Below, piece after piece: positions 3,979-64,000 of a stretch of 64,000 nucleotides of DNA (positions are counted from its first letter, which is position 1; the number at the start of each line of letters is the position of its first letter). Source of the DNA: Cycas panzhihuaensis (lineage: Eukaryota > Plantae > Cycadophyta); assembly GCA_023213395.1 (NCBI GenBank), contig CM041465.1, forward strand, positions 232,011,741 to 232,075,740, written 5' to 3'. The notes below the pieces were generated by a model, which had not been told where the DNA came from, ran no database searches, and worked only from the letters and a program-made list of their open reading frames with translations. Made by a program: the position numbers and the translations under genes.

Positions 3979-6900
3979 AGTCCCTCCATTCAAAAGATGC
4001 TTTGCCCATAAAGTATTAAAATCTTTTTGGAGTTAAGATCATATAATAGTGATAACAATTTTAGTTTTTGTTATTTTCTCCCTATGAAGAGAGGAGGCTT
4101 CTTAGTTAGGTTGTGTGAGAGGTGCTTCCAATATATATTTCTTATCTTTGTTCCAAATTTTCATAAATAACTTTTCATAATTTATTACAATTAAACCTAA
4201 GATTCTTAACTATTATACTCCCAAAATTATATTAACCTCTTACTTGGATTATAAACATCAATGATTAAATAGTATAATTAGACATTACTCAGGAAACTTT
4301 AGGGCATATAACACATCATGGCAAAGATTTATTTCCTATAATGGATACTTGGAATTGATTAAGTGGTATGATCTAAAGTCCTAATCACTTAGTTTCCTAA
4401 TAATTAATAAACTTATGTATACTTCCACCATTAATTAAAGCTCATAAGGTCTAAGGAGAATTTAAAACCCCCTTTATAAAATACAAAGAGATTTCAACAT
4501 TAGAAGTTATATGTGAGTCTTTTAGAGTTGGATCCTTATTAATCTATTCTTTGTTATTGGCATAGTTCTTGATATCATTTTTTGATACCTTTTGATCACT
4601 TTCCATTATATATAGTTTCTTTTGAGTATTTTTAATGGGATATTTATGATCCTTGACCCATTTTTCATTGCATTTAAAATGAGTCCCTTTCTTAAGATGT
4701 TTAATCCTAGATGGGGTCAATGGTTCCCATTTGAATTGATGGTTGCATTCTAGGATTATTGGGTTCATACCCTATTTTGAGAAGAATTATGTTAAATTTG
4801 GCCTTAACACTCTTTACTTGTAACATTTCTTATCAGAGGCTTGCAACTCCTAAAGTTTTTAACTTGTAGTAGATATTTCCTGTAAGTCCTTCAATATATA
4901 TTTCTAATAGCAGTTGACCATCTAACTTGGTGGATAACATACTTTATAAATTTGGGATTTCCTTTGTATACTACTATACCATTCTAATTTACCAAAGCGA
5001 ATGAAATTTGAAGTAATAATCCTTATCCTAAATATCTTTATACTGCTCACATATTATAGAATTAAAGAATGTCTAATTGAATTATGGGGTATTTTCATAA
5101 TTCTTACACCACTAATTAAACAATTATAGTGCCTTATTATTCAAGTGTAAGGATAAGAACATAATTATTTCTTTTTTTGAACATAGGTAGACATTGAAAT
5201 AAGTTTAATTTTTTGATATCCATACCCATACATCTTAGCTTACGTCTAGATTTTTAAAAAATTCTAACTAAACCTTCATATATTTTAGGATTGAACCTTT
5301 AGTCCCCTTGAATTCTTTTGGTAGAGTTTCTTCCCTTTTAATAAATTATGAATATCTTAATATGTTTTCTTCCTTTTTTAGGTATAGGGCCTTAACCACA
5401 TCCTTTTTTAGATGAAACATGTCTAGAGTGAGTTTATTGACTAAATTTTGTAGCATTTTCACCAAATCCTATTGTGATATTACTGTGTATATAAACTGTT
5501 AGAGATCCTTGACTTAGTTAATGAGTTTATCCACCTATTATAACATGTTTTTATGAGGCAAAGAGGTGTTGTATTATGATACTCTACCATATGATGTTAC
5601 TCTTATTGTAATTATCTCACATGTATAAGTCTAAGAGATGGGCAACCTTAATAGCTCCGTATATATGTATGTAATGTATGAATAGAATCATCATTGAGTA
5701 TTTTTAATCGTATGTTAATAAATATTCTTTGGAACTTTATCTTCTTCTTTGTCTTTTGTCTATCATTTTCTCTTTCTCTTTCTATGTTTATTAATTATAG
5801 GATTAGGTCCATAATAATTGGTATCAAAGTAGCAATTTGAGAGGTGTTGTCAAGGGTTTTAAAGGTATATTCAAGAGTATAAACATTAAAATTTCTAAAA
5901 AATAATGGAAAATTTAATACAAAATAACTCATCCTATAAATTTTGAGTGGTTGTATTATAGATTTTGCAGTGAAAGTATGAAAATTAGAGTAGATTTATT
6001 TTAGTCTACTTTTTTATCATCATATTTCTGGGATACATCTACTACCTCAACTTCAAAGAGCCATAACTTTAGCTATAAATATCCAAATGATTTTTTTTTT
6101 TTTTACTTTCTAATAGAAGTAGTTTAAAGTTAATTAGAGTTTGGAGTAAAAAGTTATAGCCATTTTACCAACAAGTACTATTATAATCCCTAAAAACCCT
6201 AGTAGTGAATTTATTTAAAAGGTTATAACTTTTGATCTAAATATCAAAATTTGATTTTGTCTTAATCATTGGAATCATATTTTAGAGGCCATTATTTTAA
6301 TCCATATTTATATATACTTTTTAGCTATATTTTTTTTCGAGATTATTTTTTTTTAATTTAAGGGTTTTATATTATACTTTTCTTGGTCGTTAGACTTTAG
6401 TTATAAAACCATTGCTCATGAGGATTGATATATATTTTTATATCAAAATTAGGGGATAGCAGGCTATAAACACCTTTAATCTCTCCTACACTTATATTAT
6501 TATGGTTATAGAAAGGCCCATGTTACGTATGTTTAATTCAGATGGGACTTTTTCCATAAAAGTTTAGGTTGAAGATATTAATGCATATTTAAAATCACTT
6601 AATAATGCCTACATGATCAATAAAGATATGACTTAAGTAGCCTTATTACATTTCCAAGGAGAGGCTTATCTTTGGTATAAGAAGTAGTATAAATCTAGTC
6701 CATTCCCTACATTTTACTTTCTAGAATTAGTTATTTGTAACAAATATGATACTTTTTGGTGGCAAGAAATACAAAACCTTAAGCAAGATAAATAGAAAAC
6801 TCACTAAATACTTGAAAGGTTTAATTGCAATGTGGGACAAGGAATTCTCCCCACTCCATAAAGTTAAGAATAATATAAGAATGATGAGGGAGAAACTAAA

Positions 6901-7699
6901 TATTAGGAGCAAGTAGAAAAATAGTTTACCACCCCACACCACCTATTATACCTAAGGACAAGGGAGAAAAGGTATCACGAATGGTTAAAAGCCAAACTAA
7001 AGTGGGATCATATCAACATCCACATTATTAAGAGCCTCAACATAATAAAATTTATTAAGATAAACTCTCAACAATTCTATACACAAGCCAAGCACAACAT
7101 TCGAGCTTAAGGTTTAAACATTACAAATATCTAGAGTGTATTAGAGGACATCTAAGGTGTATCAAAATTAACTTTAGATGGATAGATCTCCATTCCATAT
7201 ACAACTTTTCTAATGACCTTCATAAGAGCTATCGATTGAATAATAGTAATAGGAGGTAGTCACGTGTATCACTATATCAGGATGCTTCAAGGGTGAAGCA
7301 TTTTAGAGGGGAGGGCAGATTATGATCCTCTATTACACGAGGTTACTCTTATTATAATTATCCCACATGCATAAGTCTAAGAGATGGGTAGTGTCAATAG
7401 CCTTATATATATATATATATGTATGTAATGTATGAATAGGATCATCATTGAGCATTTGTAATCTTATGTCAATGAATGATCTTTGAACTTCTTTTTTTTT
7501 AATTAGGTAAAATAATAGAAGGGGTTTAAATAGGGCCCTAATCCTTTACACTAGTTATCTTTTGGTTAACAAAATAGCCATGAAAAGCCTATGGCCTAGC
7601 TTCACTCACCCTCTAAGACCATACTAACCCACCCTACCATGACAAGCCTAGTGGCTAGCTTAGATATTGCACACGAGGCATATCTTCTTTAATTAGTCT

Positions 7700-13700: not shown

Positions 13701-15130
13701 GCACCTTATGAAGAGTCCTCACATCTCTCTCTATCCATCTAGAAGGTGAGACTGCCTTCCCATGCCTATCTGGTATGCCTTTGACTCCTCCCAAGATTAC
13801 TAGTAAATTCGTCCTGTGAAACCCTGGCAGAGTCATATCTTCAAACAGTTAACATGACCAAGATCATTAAGTATAATGATCTTTAGAACTTCATCTCCTT
13901 CTTTGTCTTTAGCTTATCATTTTCTCTTTCTCTTTCTCTATGTTTATTAATTACAAGATTAGGTCTATAACATGTTGTATGCTTTTTTAAGGGGAGTTTT
14001 CCCTTATTTTTATATAGTTATTTTTAAGTAGAGCTTTAGAGCATCCTTATCTCAATAATTTTACCTATTAAATTATATGCTAGAGTGAAGATTATAAAAA
14101 ATCACATAGAATTAAGAAAAGAAACTTTAAAATTAGATACTAAATGATTAAACTTTAATCATTAGAAGTTAGGTATCTAAATCTTACAAAACTTTAAAAC
14201 TTTCCTTTAATCAATTTTTAAGAGTGAATACTTAGATGATTTAGCACTAAAATATGTCGTATGGATGCTTGTTTTGAAGATAATTGAATGTAAACCACAA
14301 TGAAGTAGACAACACTAGAATTTAGATTCTTAATAGAAAGTTATCAGAGTTTATATATAGAGAAGTGCAAACATTCTGATGAAGACTAAAAAAATATCTT
14401 GAGCTCCTTCAAAATGCTGCTATTAGTCAAATGTGATTTTTCATATGACTTTGGTCTATGCTTAAGGAGTGAATTTATATATTTATGTGATCAAGTTTAA
14501 TATCCATTTGTACTATAGGAAATGAAAACTTTTAAGAGTAATATATGATTTTGGGTACCGATGATGTTATGCTTAACCAAACAATTATGACCTTTATCTC
14601 AATACGTTTTCAGTGAAATTTTGCTTCATGTCATGTCATTCAAATAATATATAACTATCACATATGAGTATAATAAGATTTTATATGCCAATTAAAATGT
14701 TATGACCTTATAAAGCACCATAATATAATAGGAACATCCTTCCTTTTATCATAATTTATCATAATCAAATGGTTTTATTTGAGATAGAGCTACTAAGTTT
14801 TAGGTGGGTCTATGTCCTACAATTTACCCATAATAGCCCAATGATCCTACACTATGATAATTACTATAGTAAAGCTCCATATAGATCTCTGAAAAAAAAT
14901 GCCCAATATAATTTGAGTTCGAGATAAGTCTCTAATGGTTGTGATGAGATCCTAAATTACCCAATATGAATTAGGATCTGTGATAGTGACAAAGTAGATT
15001 GTTAAGAGGATGGAAAATAAATTAAAAAATATAATTAGTAGCTAACAAAGGTAAATGGAAAGTGAGAGACATGAGTATGAAGTCATTTAGGTTATTGAGT
15101 TCTCTGAAATCAAGTGGCTCTAATACCATT

Positions 15131-21800: not shown

Positions 21801-24800
21801 TGACTGTGGATTATTCACAGTTGTACAATTGTCCATGGCTTTGATGGTGTTGTGCATTGACCGGACTATGGGTCTGCTGCATTAATAGTTTGCTCCTATG
21901 ATTGCATGGGATTTGAAGTCATGACCCCTTCTTCACAATTGCCACTTGCTTGCTACTAGACCAAATCTGCTTCATCAATTCAGACTCCAGGCCACCATAT
22001 ACATTCCATTATTCCATGTGATGATAGTGGGTGAACATACCCTGTTTTACATTTGCTCTGTATGTTGACAGGCTTCATTGAGGCCATTTGATGGACCTGA
22101 TGAAGAAATGAACAAAAGGTGTATGCACATTTGCACATATGAAGGCAGGGTGTAATTCTATAGGGATTTGACATGCATGAGGTAGTTTCTGCCTGCAGAA
22201 ATGCTAAAGCATGTACCCATCCAATACTATTGAGGGTTTCCATGAAAAGGATCATCAAGAACCTAGGATCTTTTCCTTAACATTGAAGGATCCTTCCAAA
22301 TTAAAATTTTTAGTCAGTAGTCCAAATGGTAAAGACATTGTTGGCGAGGAGAGGAGACCAGTACAATCCATTAAATTACAGTTGTAGAAGGTATACCCAT
22401 TCTAAAAAAACTATTATGAGTACTCAAGAAAACTTGAAAGGGTCTCTAAGAACAATGATCTAGGGAGTTGGAAAGTGAAACAAACAAGAGGCAAGCCCTT
22501 GAGACATCAAGTCAGACAATTGCAAGAGAAGGCCTAGAACAAGACCCTTGAAGAGTAATTTGAAATGAAATCCATAGCATTATGGGATTTGTTTGTACTT
22601 TACAATGTCTATATAATATATTGAATACAGTGATGAACTACTGTCTTAAAACAAAGAGGGAGTTGTATCTACTATAAGACCACACAAGTGAATTGAATAT
22701 AACATCAATATGCAGTTAGGGTGTATTACATAAGATGTCATGAATGCTCATTAGTTGCACAAGGGGTGAGGTACAAGTTGTTTTCATAGTATTGCCTTTA
22801 AGTGACATATTCCCAAGAATTGTAACCCAAAATCTTGAAGGTTCATTTCAGAATTATAGCCATGAAGAAATGGTCTTGCTATAGAAGGCTTCTACTAAGG
22901 TGACTTGTGTAGCCAATCTTGAAATGGATCAACCCATGATGTGTCCGGGATGCTAACTATCAAACTTTGAAGGAAAGAGTTAAGCAAGGCCACATTCGAA
23001 CACCAAGGGAACTATGTGCATCTGATACTTTGATCAAGGACAATTTTCAATAACTAATCAAGTATTATGTTGAAGTGCAACACCTAGGGTAAAATGGTAG
23101 TTTGACATAGGTCGAAGCCACTTGGGTTGGATTATTCCCGATAAAGCAATGATGGCAAAGAGATTGGCAGCCAATTGTGAAATAATTGATTTCATATGAT
23201 AGCAATTATTGGAGCAGTTACAAACAATTGGCACTCCAATTTCCCAATAATTGGCTACTTCCTCTTGGGAATTATTATGAAGCCCATTGGGCAAAATGGG
23301 AGAAATAGTTTTGGAGATTAGGCAGACAATGTATACAAGCTCCTTTGTAATAAATATATCCATTGTTTTCCCTTTGCCCTAGGCTCTTCTCCTAGGAGAA
23401 GGTCCCCTCTTCTCTAAATTGTATATAAATAGAGGATTTATTTCATATATCTATTTTGTCCATAGTTCATGTTTGCATATACCTTTTGCTAATTTCTGTC
23501 AATTATGTTGGAGAATAATGTTTAATCTATGGCTAACCCATGATTATTTTAATTATTTAATTGGTTATCCCTCAAATGTTGTGCATGCTTATCTTAAAGA
23601 GGTGCACACTTGTGAAGACACTTAATATGTGAGCATTATTAAAATGTGTGTTTAGAGCTCACATCTTCATGTATTCAGATAGGCTATCTTAGAGGTTCTC
23701 CAATTTCATTAGACCTCTATGAGTTGAAATATGTTTATAAATATGTATCTTTTCTAATGCAATATATGAAGATTGATCATTTTTTCCCATTTCTATTGTA
23801 CTTTACAATGGTGCATATTTTATCTTTCTTTATCACGATATCGTAAATTTTTTTATATAATATTTTTAACATGATGTTAAAGCACTCCTGTAATTTTCTA
23901 ACATGGAATTATGTCTTGTGTGTTTGATATTCATCTAGCATGATGTCATACTCAATTTTCTAACATGGTATTAGAGCTAATGGTATGATTTTTGATGACC
24001 TTGGTTAGATCATTAGAGCCAATAATTTATTTCTTATGAAGTTCCATTTGTATGCATGACAAAGCTTGTATTTGGAATGCATCCTACAAAGTGATGAGTG
24101 TAATGACTTGTTATCTGTGCGTTTAGTGATGGTTACATGCTATAAGGATGTCATGGTTGAATTATGCATTGGTTTCTTTGATTGTTGGACACCATGGATT
24201 TCTTTGGAGCAAAGAACATAAGTAGGCATATATCTGTTGGCATGAAGATATGGGGTATTCTATCGATGTTGGAATCCTCTCATAGTTGGAGAAATCCTAT
24301 ACATCAAGTATCTTGTGGATGCATTGATTATGTTTGCTTGGAGGGTTTCAATGGATCTTATTTGCGGATTTTATGTTTGATATGATGGATAAGTATAGAT
24401 TGGGTAAGTTATGAAGTTGAGATCTTAAATTGATAGTGAGATTGTTCTAGTGGACTATGTTTATGCATGTGGTTAGCCTAAAAAATTTGCATGTAGGAGT
24501 TTTAAAGTTGGGTCCACAAGCTCAATTATATTTAATATTTTTTTGCTCAGGGGATATAACATGAATGAATGGATTAAATCTTGCAAAGTTGAGTTGTAGT
24601 TGTGAGCATGAAATGAGGCCATAGTGGCCTATTGCTGAAGAGGAGTAGCCCATGCTAGTGGGGAAGTGAGTGTTGTTAGTTCATGTAGAAGATTGTGGAT
24701 GTAGGCCTAATCACCTTGTTATGGCAAAGAGTAGTGGGCAAATGTCGACTAAATGAAGCCCACATAGTAGATTTGGAGATGCCCATGTAGATTAATGTTG

Positions 24801-38896: not shown

Positions 38897-39448
38897 AATT
38901 TTATAATAACACCACCATTTTGATGTATTTTTATGTACATCATGTTTATTTTGTACTTTAGGCGACCAATATTATAAAATTAATCATGTTTTATATTTAG
39001 GTCGGGTCGGCCGTATGTGCCGCTTAGTGGGCCAATTGTATTATTGGAAATCTTGGTGGGTTGCTTATAAATTAAGCCTTGCATCATTCTTTTGTACATA
39101 ATTTGGGAGTATATGTGGAAGCTCTGCCATTTGGGAGCCTCACGAGGTGACTAATTCGCCGGTGAATGATTTATTTCAGTTCTGCTTTTGTTTTTTGCAT
39201 GTTTATTCCATTATTGTGTTAGTTTAATATGATATTATGCCAGTAGCACATTGAATCTAGATCTTGGATGATTTTATTAGTATTCTCATAGGTTATCTCA
39301 CAGGTTCTTCAATTTCATTAGACCTCAATGAGTTGACATGCATTTATAAATATGTACCTTGTCTAATGCAATAAATGAGGATGGATCATTTTTTTCCATT
39401 CCTATTGTACTTTGCATTGCTGCATATTTCATCTTTCTTTATGATAGT

Positions 39449-40356
39449 TGTTATGATCCTCCACCATATGATGTTACTCTTATTGTAATTTATCCCACAT
39501 GCATAAGTCTAAGAGATGGGTAGCCTTAATAGCCCCATATATATATATATGATGTATGAGTGGGATGATCATTGTGTATTTGTAATCTTATGTTAATAAA
39601 TGTTCTTTGGAACTTCATCTCCTTCTTTATCTTTTGTCTATCATTTTCTATTTCTATTTCTCTATGTTGAATGGTTACAGGAATCAGTTCATTACAAGTG
39701 GTATCAGAGCTTTGTTCCGAAGTGGGAATTTTAAGGGAAGCTCTGATACCATGTTATGATCCTCCACCATATGATGTTACTCCTATTGTAATTTATCCCA
39801 CATGCATAAGTCTAAGACATGAGTAGCCTTAATAGCCCCATATATATGTATGTAATGTATGAGTGGGATGATCGTTGTGTATTTGTAATCTTATGTTAAT
39901 GAATGTTCTTTGGAACTTCATCTCCTTCTTTATCTTTTGTCTATCATTTTCTATTTCTATTTCTCTATGTTGAATGGTTACAAGAATCGGTTCATTACAA
40001 GTGGTGTAAGAGCTTTGTTCCGAAGCAAGAATTTTAAGGGAATTTTTTCCAAAGGGAAGGAAATTTTGACCCAAAATTCTCGCTTCAGAATGAAGCTTTG
40101 ATACCACTTGTAATGAACTGATTCCTGTAACCATTCAACATAGAGAAATAAAAATAGAAAATCATAGACAAACGATAAAGAATGAGATGAAGTTCCAAAG
40201 AACATTCATTAACATAAGATTACAAATACACAATGACCATCCCACTCATACATTACATACATATATATGGGGCTATTAAGGCTACCCATTTCTTAGACTT
40301 ATGCATGTGGGATAAATTACAATAAGAGTAACATCATATGGTAGAGGATCATAACA
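39449..40356. mobile_element. Mini-element F: three ~248-bp LTRs (+,+,-) of the M LTR family separated by convergent PBS pairs
   Basis: LTR1 39449-39696, PBS 39699-39710, reverse PBS 39740-39751, LTR2 39752-39999, degenerate PBS 40002-40013, reverse PBS 40095-40106, inverted LTR3 40109-40356. Flanks ATAGT/ACAAT. Host LTR B resumes colinearly. Confidence 0.9.
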
Positions 40357-41199
40357 ACAATATCATAACTTTTCTTGTATAATATTTTTAACATGATATT
40401 AGAGCACTTATGTAATTTTCTTACATGGTATTATCTCTTATGTGTTTGATATTCATCTAACATGATGTCAAACCCAATTTTCTAGCAAATTATGCATTAT
40501 TTCATGCTTCCTCATGGTTATCTCTATTGACTCCATTTGTATCATCCTGCCCATGTTGTTTTTAAATATTGTATCATTGGCAATATTGGTCACGTACATG
40601 CACAATCAATATGAAATCATTCAACCATCATTCCAAGCAGTCAACTAAATTACCATGCAATCATTTAATCAAACCGCAACATGAAACAAAGTAAGGTATG
40701 AGACTTGGTTGGTGTTAATAGGGGGTGTAGTTATTTGAAACAATAAGTATTGACTAAATTTTCATATAGTTAGAAAAAATATTAAAAGTTACCAAAAATC
40801 ATCTAAAATGTTTAGAATTGATATTTACTTACATACATAAAATTACTCCACCCACTAGTCTATGAATTCTTTTTTTTTTGTGCCCAAACTCAATCAAGAC
40901 CTTCTCCTTGCCCAAAATTAAAAATTATGATTATCTTTCACTTTTTAAAAATTTTGGCCCAATCAAAATCTATAAATCCTGTCAACTTGAAGTTATCATT
41001 ATGATGGAATTTGAGTTCATAATGAATTGTCCTTTTCAAGTATTTGAGGATTTTTTTTATAACAATGGAGATGTGGGCAATAGACTAGGTAGCCATCACC
41101 TAGCTTTAGGGAACCATCACCCATCTTTAAGGGACCATTGCCCAGTTTTAGGGCCATTGGTCACATGTTTACTCCATGTGACTGTCCCCTCCTTAAATA

Positions 41200-58736: not shown

Positions 58737-61700
58737 TGTAGCAAATCAAATTACTCAGTCTGGCCGAGTTAGAAGCATTGTCCTAGCCGACTTAAATGTG
58801 TTATTAAAGCCAATATTTCACCTTGTCTTGGCTGATTTCTATATGGAGGCAGAATCCAATTATATAAGGGATTTAGGAACTTCATTCCCAACCAAGCTAG
58901 CACTGATTTGGTAAGATATTTTTGGCCTTTAAGGCAATAGTACTTCGGCCCTTTGGGCAACAGTAATTGGAGGCTACCTCACCTCGAAGAGGGAGCATTA
59001 TCTTAGCTCCAATACTAGACTTAACTTAGATTTAGTTACCCTATATCTGGTGATATTTTCCTCATTCATTTCCCACTTATTTTGTGACTGGGGTAGCCCT
59101 CTTTCTCATTCATTTATTGCTGCATTTATAGACATATTTTGTTATCACTTGATGTGCATTATTTTTATTTGGAGTCTTTTTCAGCTGATATTCGGGATCT
59201 AAGCAAATCTTGTCGCTATAAATGGTATCAGAGCTTCATTTTGAAGCGAGAATTCAAAGGGAAGTGGTAAAAATTAGCAATCAAATTCCCCCTCCGCGAG
59301 ACGGAAACTAGGTTGGAAAAAAGCTTCACCAACAACATAGTGAATCAGGCCCCAAATTAGATTGAGGGGATAGACAAAAAGCTAGACGAATTGAACAACA
59401 GCATAAAAATTGTTGCAGAGCAAATAAGAGGGTGGATGAAAACCTTCAAGGAGACTCCTTAGTTTCATAGATTTGAGATAATCATGGAAGAAGAAGAATC
59501 ATTGGGCATCGAGAAGCTAGGGGAATATGACACCTAGGATGAACCCATCAACCAAGAAAATCCCAACAGATACAGAGGGACAACATTTGAGAGAAGAGGA
59601 CCAAAAAACACACATACGGATCATGGACTCAAAGGAACCAAACTTTCATTGGAAAAGTCTAATCTAGATAGATCGAGGGACAATAGAAGTTGGTTACTAC
59701 AGATGGAAACATATTTTGAGGTTTATGGACTAGACAACAAGGATAAGATTTCAACAACAACCCTTCACTTGTATGGAAGGGCATTACAATGGTTCTATTG
59801 GTGGAAGAAGATCAACACAAGAGTCCAAGGATCTTGGGACTATTTAAAAAGGGGCTTGATTAATCAGTACAAAGATTCATGGAACACAGACTACTTCGCC
59901 CAACTAACGTGGCTACATCAAATGTGATCGGTACAGGAATACACAGAGCAATTTCAAGGACTTTAATGTCTTGTTTCAAAGATAATACTAGCAGAATGTC
60001 TCATGGAAACTTGCATCAGTGGCTTAAAGGGACCAATTAGATTTTGCATCAAGTCCATGAGTCCAATAAATATTCAACACGTGATTAAATTGGCCAAAAA
60101 CATCGAAGCTGAATTCAAGGAGAGCCAACCGACATTTACGCACAGATATGAGCCGAATACAAATTAGCACTAGGGGTCAAACCCAAATTAGATAAAGTCA
60201 AGTACAAAGGTGGACCTGCCATTAACAGTAAAAAATTTGAATGATATGAACGAAATATTAAGAGATGAACATCTCAAAAAGGGGACATGCTTTGAGTGCA
60301 GGGGTAAATGGAACCAAGAACACCAGTGCCCAACAAAAAAGGTGTTCATAATTAACAACAAAAACGGGGAAATCCCGAAAGAAGAAGAGATTAAGCAAGC
60401 TTCGGAAGAGGAAGCCAAAGAAGGCCAACTTTTGGAGGTGGATACCAAGCACGTGCAAATTTCATTGTAAGCCATTACAGGGTAGCAAGTCACTCCTCAA
60501 ACCCTCAGGTTCCAAGGAATGATTAAAGGAGCTTCGATGGCAATTCTGGTAAATAGTGGCAGCACCCATAATTTTATCAACTGAGCCACAACAAAGAAGT
60601 TAGGATTAGCAATCTAATCATTAAATATATTCCATGTGTCCATTGCAAATGGAAAAACTACCCTATGTGGCGGGTATGGCAAATCCGTAAATTTACAAAC
60701 TGGGGATTATCCAGTAACCACATTGATGTTTGTGATGTTGATTGGAGGTGTGGATGCAGTCTTAGGCATTCGGTGGCTGCAAATGTTGGGGAATGTAGTT
60801 ACATCCTATATGATGTAATTCATGTGCTTCTACCAGAAGGGACAAAAGTATAACCTTCAAGCACCCGCTACACCACCAGTGCAATTGGTATCCTCACACC
60901 GAATGGAGAAAATATTGAAGAAAAATCCTTTGGCATACATATTAACATGCTATAGAATAGCAGTAGAGGATGTGCCACCCAAAGTATAAGAAATCCTAAA
61001 TGAGCATAGCTCGATATTTAAGGAACCTCAAGGGCTCCCTCCCCAATGTGAACATCAACACACTATTAAGCTGGTACCGGGAGTAGCACCAGTAAACATA
61101 CGGCCATACAGACACCCGTATCACTTGAGAAAGGAGATTGAAAATATCACAAGGGAACTCTTAGCACAGGGATAGATAGCGAATAGTACAACCCTGTTTG
61201 CATCACCAGTGGTGGTGAACCCTAAAACGGACAAATCCTATAGGATGTGTGTAGACTATCAAGGATTAAACAAATTGATAGTAAAGAATTGTTATCCCAT
61301 TCTTAGGATAGATGATTTGCTCGATGAAATTCATGGAGCAAGATATTTTACGAAAATTGGTCTTAGATTTGGGTACTATTAGATCTGTTTCAAAGAAGAG
61401 GATGTTTACAAAACAACTTTTTGCACCCATGAGGGGCTGTTTGAGTTCAAAGTTATGTCGTTCGGATTGGCGAATGTCCCGACTACATTTTAAAGTACCA
61501 TGAATGCGATATTGAAACCATTATTATGAAAATTTGTGCTAGTCTTTTTTGATGATATACAACAAAACTTGGAAGAACACCTAGACCATATCAGGGCGGT
61601 CTTGATGATCTTGGAAAAACACCAAATTATATGCGAACATGGGAAAATGCACCTTTGCAAAAGAAGCATTAGAATATGCAGGGCATGTCATTACCAGGGA

Positions 61701-64000
61701 AGGGATCGAGATAGATCCAAAGAAGACACAAGTTATCGTCAATTGATCAATGCCAAAGAATGTGACAGGGATAAGAAGCTTTTTAGGAGTAGCAGGGTTC
61801 TTTTAGAAGTTTGTTAAGGGATACACCCATATTGCAACACCTCTAACAAATCTTACGAAGAAAAATGTATTTGGATGGAACCCATCAGTAGAGAAAGCCT
61901 TCAAAGACCTCAAAAGAGCAATGATTACTACACCGGTTCAAGCAATACCAGACTTTTCTCAACCATTTATCTTAGAGTGTGATGCTTTCGGATTCGGGAC
62001 TGGAGTCATTCTAATACAAGAGGGTTGACTGATAATGTATGAAAGCAGGAAGTTGAACAATGGAGAGAAGTTAAAACCAATATATGACAAAGAGATGTTG
62101 GCAATTATGCATGCGATTCAATAGTGGAGGCAATATCTTCTCATAAACAAATTCATAGTTTGAACAGACCACGACAACCTAAAATACTTCTTGAATCAGA
62201 AAATGTTATCAGACGAACAACAAAAATGGGTGAGTAACTTGCAAACATTCGATTTCAGTATTGAATACAAAAGAGGGAAAGAGAATGTCATAGCAGACGC
62301 CCTATCAAGGCTATCAGAGGAGAACAATAGGGAAATATCTCTCAATGCGGTAACAATAGCAACTGCTAATTGGACTTGGGAATTAATTGCAGAATACGAG
62401 GGCGATCCATTCTCACAGAAAGTGTTAGAAGATATACAGACCCAAAAGACGTTGAAGTTTGATCTGCATGGAGATTTGATTCTACAGAAAGGAAAGATAT
62501 TTGTCCCAACAAGGTCCAAAGTAAAGGAGGTCTTAGTAGATGAGGCCCACTCAACGCCTACAACAGGACACACAGGAATTGATAAAACCTACCGAAAAAT
62601 AAGAAATTATTTTTACTGGAAGGGGATGAAAGTAGATATCCTAAAGAGAGTATCAGAATGTGACATTTATCAACATAACAAAGGCAAATGTGTGAAAAGC
62701 TTGGGATTGTTACAACCTCTACATATCCCAACCCAAAAATAGGAAGAAATTTCTATGGATTTCATTACAGGGCTCCCATGATCAGAAGGAAAGGATGCTA
62801 TTTTCATAGTAGTGGACAAACTTACAAAATATGTGTATTTTAGGGGGACGCAAACTACAACGAAGGCAAGTTAGATTGTGGAAGTATACATGAAAGAAAT
62901 GCATCAATTGCATAGGTTTCCAAAGATCATAATTAGTGACAGAGACCTGAAATTTACTAACCATTTTTGGCAGGATCTATTCAAGTTGGCAGGAACAAAA
63001 TTACATACGAGCACTACCTATCACCCATAAATGGATGGTCAAACTGAGGCGGTAAGCAAGTGTCTAGAAGGATACCTACGAAACTTTTTCTCAGACAAAC
63101 AAAACCAATAGCACAAGTGGCTCCACTTAGCAGAATGGTGGTACAATACCACATACTATATATCAGCTAAAATGATGCCATTCCAAGCATATCTATATTT
63201 ACCTGGACAAACATATCACATGTTCAATTAATCTGTGAATAACAGGAGTAGGTAGAATGAAACAATACAAATATTAAAAGATAATCTAAATATTGCAAGG
63301 AATAGGATGAAACAACAAGCGGATGCAAAAAGAATGGAGAGGAGTTTTGAAGTAGGGGATTGGTTTTTTCTTAGACTTCAACCCTATAAACAAGTATCAC
63401 TGCAACAAACGAACAAACAGAAATTAGCATCGCGGTTTCACGGACCATACCAAGTCAAAAAAAAGATCAGGGAAGTAGTATATCGCCTACTCCTACCCCC
63501 AGAAAGCAAAATTCATGACGTCTTCCATGTGTCCTACTTGAAAAAGAAGATAGGTGAGAAGATAACTCCTCAGACAACAATTCCAAAATTAGACGAAGAG
63601 GGGAAGATGACTACCAAACTCAATGGGATTTTATGGACAAGAATGAGAGAACTACGCTCTAGAAGAATTCAGGAGTTCCTCATAAAATGGAAGACTCTAG
63701 ATGCAGAGGATGCCACTTGGGAGTCTGAAGCATGGATGCAACAACATCCTAATTTACCCATGCTTGGAGGGCAAAGCATGTTTTTGAGGGGCAGGACATG
63801 TAGTAAACCAAATTACTCCGTCTTGGCCGACTTAGAAGCATTGTCCTGGCCGACTTACATGTGTTATTAAAGCTAGTATTTCACCTTGGCTTGCCCGACT
63901 TCTATATGGAGACAGAGTCCAATTATATAAGGGACTCATGGGCTTCATTCCCAACCAAGCTAGCACTAGTTTGGCAAGATATATTTGGCCTTTAAAGCAG
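58737..64000 (+). mobile_element. Ty3/gypsy chromovirus H (Reina-like); 3' LTR runs off the window
   Basis: 5' LTR 58737-59220. PBS TGGTATCAGAGC at 59223-59234. PPT 63786-63798. 3' LTR from 63799 matches the 5' LTR. Confidence 0.95.
59430..63800 (+). pseudogene. Chromovirus H gag-pol remnant with C-terminal chromodomain
   Basis: Gag WLLQMETYF..LHLYGRALQWF, protease ILVNSGSTHNFI, RT VFFDDI, integrase zinc-binding region AHSTPTTGHTG, GPY/F motif RFHGPYQV, chromodomain EFLIKWKTLDAEDATWE. Confidence 0.93.

Follow-up and report, generated by a model that had tools for sequence, protein, structure and literature searches.

What is a PBS doing, in inverted orientation, at the position where an LTR retrotransposon would carry its polypurine tract (PPT)? 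The question is raised by a locus in a 64-kb stretch of DNA from Cycas panzhihuaensis, analysed here as a whole (the window), in which two direct LTRs of one family are separated by a very short spacer whose last 12 nt read as the 3' end of tRNA-iMet. A preliminary description had considered that the plus strand was primed by a tRNA rather than at a PPT, the pair then being a PPT-less, double-PBS mini-retroelement, or else that a tRNA end was fixed at an aberrant cDNA junction. We examined the junction, the larger cluster to which it belongs, the insertion site, the relatives of the family within the window and comparable arrangements elsewhere.

Results

Anatomy of the junction and of the cluster

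The arrangement first described, i.e. direct LTRs 55 bp apart with a PBS, 29 nt and an inverted PBS in direct contact with the TG of LTR2, was confirmed to the base (Table 1). LTR1 and LTR2 have the ends TGTTATG...CATTACA and differ at 10 of 248 sites (96% identity). The direct repeat is 291 nt long rather than 248, with a spacing of 303, as LTR2 is followed by the same AG, PBS and 29-nt leader as LTR1; the sequence downstream of LTR2 is thus the element's own. The 12 nt in front of LTR2 are the inverted PBS and not a polypurine tract, the nearest purine run (8 nt) ending 11 nt upstream. No TSD surrounds the LTR1-LTR2 pair, with ATAGT upstream and AGTGG downstream. The junction is also not that of a 2-LTR circle, in which the end of U5 lies directly or nearly on the start of U3, given that 55 bp intervene, including 29 nt of leader.

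Table 1 Features of the three-LTR cluster, of its flanks and of a relative, in window coordinates.
Feature	Position	Strand	Remark
Left flank, host LTR of a different family	39280-39448	+	87% identity to window 23671-23833
LTR1, family F	39449-39696	+	TG...CA, 248 bp
AG spacer, PBS and 29-nt leader	39697-39739	+	AG at 39697-39698; PBS TGGTATCAGAGC at 39699-39710, exact 12-nt match; leader at 39711-39739
Inverted PBS GCTCTGATACCA, sense of tRNA-iMet 3' end	39740-39751	+	abuts TG of LTR2
LTR2, direct copy, U3 terminus intact	39752-39999	+	248 bp, 0-nt gap after inverted PBS
AG, decayed PBS, ~59 nt plus-sense leader, 22 nt inverted LTR3 leader	40000-40094	+	PBS at 40002-40013, 2 mismatches
Unit 3, inverted: PBS, 2-nt spacer, LTR3	40095-40356	-	PBS at 40095-40106, 1 mismatch; LTR3 at 40109-40356
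Right flank, host LTR continued	40357-40487	+	87% identity to window 23835-23965
Relative M: 5' LTR, PBS, non-coding interior, purine tract, first part of 3' LTR	5572-7491	+	PBS at 5819; purine tract at 7305-7315

The true length of the inverted repeat is 14 bp (PBS plus TT against AA plus inverted PBS), and the terminal inverted repeats of the LTRs lengthen the helix of the resulting hairpin to ~21 bp. Folded as RNA, the region of the PBS hairpin has a free energy of -31.3 kcal/mol, unmatched by any of 200 shuffled sequences (z = -7.2). With just three exact occurrences of the PBS 12-mer in the 64-kb window, an inverted copy that lies 29 nt away and ends at the first base of an LTR is not a matter of chance. 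This inserted 12-mer has exactly the boundaries of the PBS and is flanked by 2-3-nt microhomology.

Several other searches around the junction gave negative results. A second copy of the junction was not found within the 64-kb window, and ARAGORN detected no tRNA or tRNA-like gene there. A 23-mer across the junction had no exact match among bacterial and archaeal genomes or viral contigs, nor did the general double-PBS pattern occur in the viral set; as these collections do not include plants, such blanks are uninformative. Beyond the 12-mer, the 29-nt leader showed no convincing match to tRNA-iMet in a comparison made by eye, which is a weak test. A 51-aa ORF that spans the spacer was translated and retrieved no candidates from the protein collection.

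The pair is only one part of a larger structure, a cluster of 908 bp (39449-40356) that contains three LTR modules in the order > > <, with LTR3 standing head-to-head with LTR2. Each module consists of a complete LTR, beginning at the exact TG of U3, followed by AG, the PBS and a leader of 29, ~59 or 22 nt. The 29-nt leader is homologous after LTR1, LTR2 and LTR3, and also in an element at 59223 (termed H).

The palindrome formed by LTR2 and LTR3 (39958-40150) scores up to 64 bits against models of plant miRNAs with long hairpins, for which the gathering threshold of MIR2630 is 144. These Rfam matches on the palindrome, to MIR2630, MIR2606, MIR7504 and others, were rejected as reflecting generic long-hairpin structure alone; inverted LTR pairs of this type could be miscalled as MIR genes by annotation pipelines.

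The insertion site

All 908 bp of the cluster form one insert in the host LTR. A paralogue of this LTR within the window represents the empty site: at 23833/23835, the homologues of 163 bp of left flank and 131 bp of right flank abut. Relative to this paralogous site, the joined flanks are longer by a net 5 nt, as an integrase TSD would be. The outer candidate TSD (ATAGT versus ACAAT) is poor, agreeing at only 3 of 5 positions, the empty-site reference being only an 87% paralogue. In the paralogue, the insertion target (23835-23844) is a 10-bp palindrome, ACGATATCGT, and it is because this target is itself palindromic that the flanks of the cluster resemble inverted copies of each other.

Two further observations concern the host LTR. 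Both CpGs of the target palindrome have decayed in the filled copy. In addition, the host LTR family (23860-23977 and 40380-40405) carries within its U5 degenerate motifs of the type "LTR end + PBS", e.g. ACA followed by TGATATTAGAGC.

Ages and sources of the three units

Pairwise comparison of the three LTRs gave 10, 11 and 12 differences over 248 sites. We polarised the variable sites using relative M and the leader of the element at 59223 as outgroups, which left ~6, 9 and 7 private changes per 291-nt unit. The units are therefore of nearly equal age, and the private-change counts are consistent with a near-simultaneous origin of all three.

The units nevertheless fall into two source types. 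Units 1 and 2 have four derived states in common, one at LTR site 14 and three in the leader (TTTG...C versus TTCA...T), whereas unit 3 retains at these four sites the state of the outgroups M and H. The pattern would fit two slightly different source RNAs that were packaged together, as a particle with two genomes would lead one to expect; alternatively, unit 1 could have been copied from unit 2 somewhat later.

Relatives of the family within the window

Relative M has LTRs that are 84% similar to those of family F, an interior of 1.5 kb and a 5-bp TSD, TGTTG. The preliminary description had attributed a normal PPT to this element, and rightly so, as its purine tract lies just before the 3' LTR. 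Relatives of family F therefore use an ordinary PPT. The rest of the 3' LTR of M is found at 13875-13972, a 6.4-kb insertion having split it. The two halves (7475-7491 and 13875-13892) have ~17 bp in common as a direct duplication, whose length far exceeds that of a 5-bp TSD.

The element at 59223 (58900-64000) is decayed but encodes integrase zinc-binding, SH3 and chromo domains, and is therefore a chromovirus. It has the PBS and the first ~30 nt of the leader in common with the non-coding family F, the LTRs of the two being unrelated. Judged from this common leader sequence, chromovirus H is a plausible helper, likely forming a helper-parasite pair with family F.

PBS hairpins in metagenomes

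JGI metagenome contigs were scanned for a PBS, 15-45 nt and an inverted PBS. Four loci were retrieved (L001-L004), belonging to two unrelated retroelement families. In the first family, represented in two different metagenomes (L001:3267-3376 and L004:228-337), an inverted repeat of 38 nt, composed of the U5 end and the PBS, encloses a 34-nt loop and lies ~250 nt from a copia-type protease motif. In the second (L002:6975-7565 and L003:1640-2240), three LTR-like units of ~130 nt, each with a tRNA-iMet PBS, follow each other in the order > < >, and the contig also contains a 19-bp PBS hairpin beside an (AT)n microsatellite. Scrambled clusters of similar style are thereby seen in another organism.

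At all four loci, an inverted U5 end comes after the inverted PBS, giving a copy-back palindrome like that of LTR2 and LTR3. PBS-centred palindromes thus recur across plant-type retroelements. An inverted PBS joined to the start of U3 was found at none of the four, so that the scan provided no second example of the LTR1-LTR2 junction.

Discussion

A probable chain of aborted cDNAs

We favour, with moderate confidence, an origin of the 908-bp cluster as the fossil of aberrant reverse transcription and joining in a non-autonomous LTR family, apparently a one-off accident. Every boundary of the cluster is a normal start or stop of reverse transcription: the U3 terminus in all three units, the 5' edge of the PBS and, within the leader, ragged ends. 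Of the two possibilities raised in the preliminary description, the aberrant cDNA junction is the one that fits this anatomy.

We infer the order of events and the enzymes involved as follows. Three copies of a 5' cDNA piece would have been synthesised within one particle, on two RNAs that differed slightly. Within the leader, nascent plus-sense DNA would have changed template at a microhomology of 2-3 nt (GAA versus TTC or TTT), moving to a second plus-sense molecule, which the switched strand would then have copied backwards, next to its PBS. Where the template was DNA, copying would continue through the whole LTR, yielding the head-to-head LTR2 and LTR3. Where it was genomic RNA that RNase H had trimmed to the PBS, the strand would run off after 12 nt, leaving a 3' end formed by the tRNA-sense 12-mer. 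Twelve nucleotides is likewise the part of the initiator tRNA that reverse transcriptase may read before the bulky modification at position 64. The run-off end would have been linked to the next molecule at its intact U3, through end-joining in the manner of a 2-LTR circle or through an end-to-end template jump. Finally, a single integration would have placed the chain, with a U3 terminus at both outer ends, in the host LTR. The inverted PBS would then be the run-off scar of a copy-back event and not a primer site for the plus strand.

Elements of this pathway have precedents. Copy-back palindromes centred on a PBS occur in the two metagenome families described above. For HIV and MLV, aberrant LTR junctions that retain remnants of primer sites have been described (PMC2797772). 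In plant virus-like particles, abortive strong-stop products and autointegration occur, and active elements are characterised by RNase H cleavage immediately upstream of the PBS (PMC7197481). In eukaryotes, the initiator tRNA bears a ribosyl-phosphate at position 64 (PMC7694415). In plants, this modification might block reverse transcriptase after 12 nt. The preferred pathway as a whole would nonetheless need at least two non-standard steps, which are reconstructed rather than seen directly. Against it also count the poor agreement of the outer candidate TSD and the finding that all four metagenome loci are palindromic, with no inverted PBS joined to U3.

A possible tandem duplication at the DNA level

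The cluster could instead have arisen by a local tandem duplication of LTR, PBS and leader, the 12-mer being a snap-back templated filler left by microhomology-mediated end joining or replication slippage. The 291-nt direct repeat at a spacing of 303 has the appearance expected of such an event, the 14-bp inverted repeat begins at an AA/TT microhomology, as templated insertions do, and the four derived sites set units 1 and 2 apart from unit 3. However, the duplication would have to begin at the first base of an LTR and the filler to end at the last base of a PBS, two boundaries that a repair process would not be expected to observe, and the private changes (6, 9 and 7) favour a simultaneous origin over a later duplication. 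We therefore regard this route as unlikely.

The PBS hairpin and miRNA genes

Whatever its origin, the PBS hairpin might now act like MIR1511 or MIR845, as a source of 21-22-nt RNA corresponding to the 3' end of tRNA-iMet and directed against the PBS of LTR retrotransposons. Both miR845 and miR1511 target the tRNA-iMet PBS of such elements (PMC7197481, PMC8824631, PMC9780303, PMC8215267), and their precursors (RF03728, RF00901; PMC8215267, PMC7197481) are organised like our locus, the 5' arm carrying the PBS and the 3' arm the 3' end of tRNA-iMet. Two Rfam models, MIR1511 (25.8 bits) and MIR845_1 (22.1 bits), align precisely with 39687-39761. In the core of the stem (13 nt of the 5' arm and 14 nt of the 3' arm), the sequence does not differ from the MIR1511 consensus, and the stem reaches ~21 bp thanks to the terminal inverted repeats of the LTRs.

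These scores are, however, about one quarter of the gathering thresholds (100 and 81 bits, respectively). The stem and the loop are shorter than in the two miRNA families, there is no lower stem beneath the 21-bp duplex, and the locus is embedded in nested, probably methylated repeats. Judging by model scores and stem architecture, the hairpin does not appear to be a member of MIR1511 or MIR845, and a present role as a small-RNA source seems quite improbable.

The proposed mini-element without a PPT

The headline possibility takes LTR1 and LTR2, with the 55-bp spacer between them, as a PPT-less, double-PBS mini-retroelement, in which tRNA-iMet, annealed to the minus-strand copy of the inverted PBS, primes at U3. 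On paper the scheme is coherent: the inverted PBS stops precisely at U3, as a plus-strand primer must, the 12-mer is the 3' end of the tRNA, and the leader in common with a chromovirus of the window points to a possible supplier of proteins. Several observations speak against it. The LTR1-LTR2 pair lacks a TSD, and LTR2 is followed by a second PBS and leader and then by an inverted LTR, i.e. the pair is part of the > > < cluster. All three LTRs are of the same age, only one copy is present in 64 kb, and relative M has an ordinary purine tract. In the transcript, the element's own PBS would be locked in a hairpin of -31 kcal/mol, which should hinder annealing of the tRNA. Furthermore, neither of the two double-PBS families found elsewhere has this layout.

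We thus give the mini-element very little credence, and priming of the plus strand by a tRNA at U3, as initially proposed, is unsupported at this locus, where LTR2 behaves as a 5' LTR with its own PBS and leader. The broader version of the idea fares no better: it is highly doubtful that the 303-bp unit (LTR, PBS, 29 nt and inverted PBS) founded, or belongs to, a PPT-less miniature element with descendants elsewhere in the genome. Such an element, if real, would use tRNA-iMet twice, on RNA for the minus strand and on minus-strand DNA for the plus strand.

Other origins

Although the region is repeat-rich, a chimeric or collapsed assembly join inside a repeat is very improbable, given that the 10-12 differences per 248 sites between the LTR copies are distributed as is usual for old paralogues, that the boundaries are base-exact at functional sites and that the flanks match a paralogous empty site. 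Three other origins were considered and dropped. Insertion of LTR2 as a solo LTR into an older palindrome would call for a TSD, and none is present (TACCA versus AGTGG). An inversion circle produced by autointegration would place the 3' LTR head-to-head, and not the PBS-bearing 5' LTR. An internal deletion of a full element would require the 12 nt before LTR2 to be a remnant of the purine tract, which they are not.

Comparison with known systems and implications

The locus is a rearranged LTR-retrotransposon insert, which is a known kind of structure, and its interest is modest unless the junction proves recurrent. One of the nearest types of element is the TRIM, a class of small non-autonomous LTR retrotransposons reportedly described by Witte et al. 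in 2001. The locus has in common with TRIMs its short LTRs with TG...CA ends, a 12-nt tRNA-iMet PBS, the absence of coding sequence and a leader that is also found in an autonomous element (PMC4717578). It differs from them in that the pair has neither PPT nor TSD and that LTR2 is followed by a PBS and then by an inverted LTR. Cassandra TRIM arrays likewise have tandem LTRs with a very short internal domain between them, at the beginning of which lies the same PBS; their units, however, retain a PPT and form uniform arrays, whereas our locus has two direct units only, with an inverted PBS at the position of the PPT (PMC7215508).

Another comparison is with the aberrant retroviral junctions, in which errors of primer removal or of end repair fix nucleotides of the primer site at the end of an LTR. 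The retroviral examples show PBS-sense bases after U5 or PPT bases before U3, in contrast to the tRNA-sense 12-mer that precedes U3 here (PMC2797772). The head-to-head PBSs exploited by iPBS markers resemble LTR2/LTR3 and the four metagenome loci, with PBSs that face each other at short distance. Such arrangements are usually ascribed to nested or neighbouring insertions, but here the arms meet in the leader, with no host DNA between them (PMC9245474).

Only if the junction were recurrent, with independent TSDs, would it alter what is known of plus-strand priming. The accident of reverse transcription proposed here also suggests a concrete route to hairpins with one PBS arm and one tRNA-iMet arm, the architecture of MIR1511 and MIR845. 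As a one-off, the locus is a clean fossil of the ends that exist inside a plant retrotransposon particle, namely the U3 terminus, the stop at the edge of the PBS and the variable ends in the leader, and the cluster indicates that such cDNA ends can be chained together and integrated.
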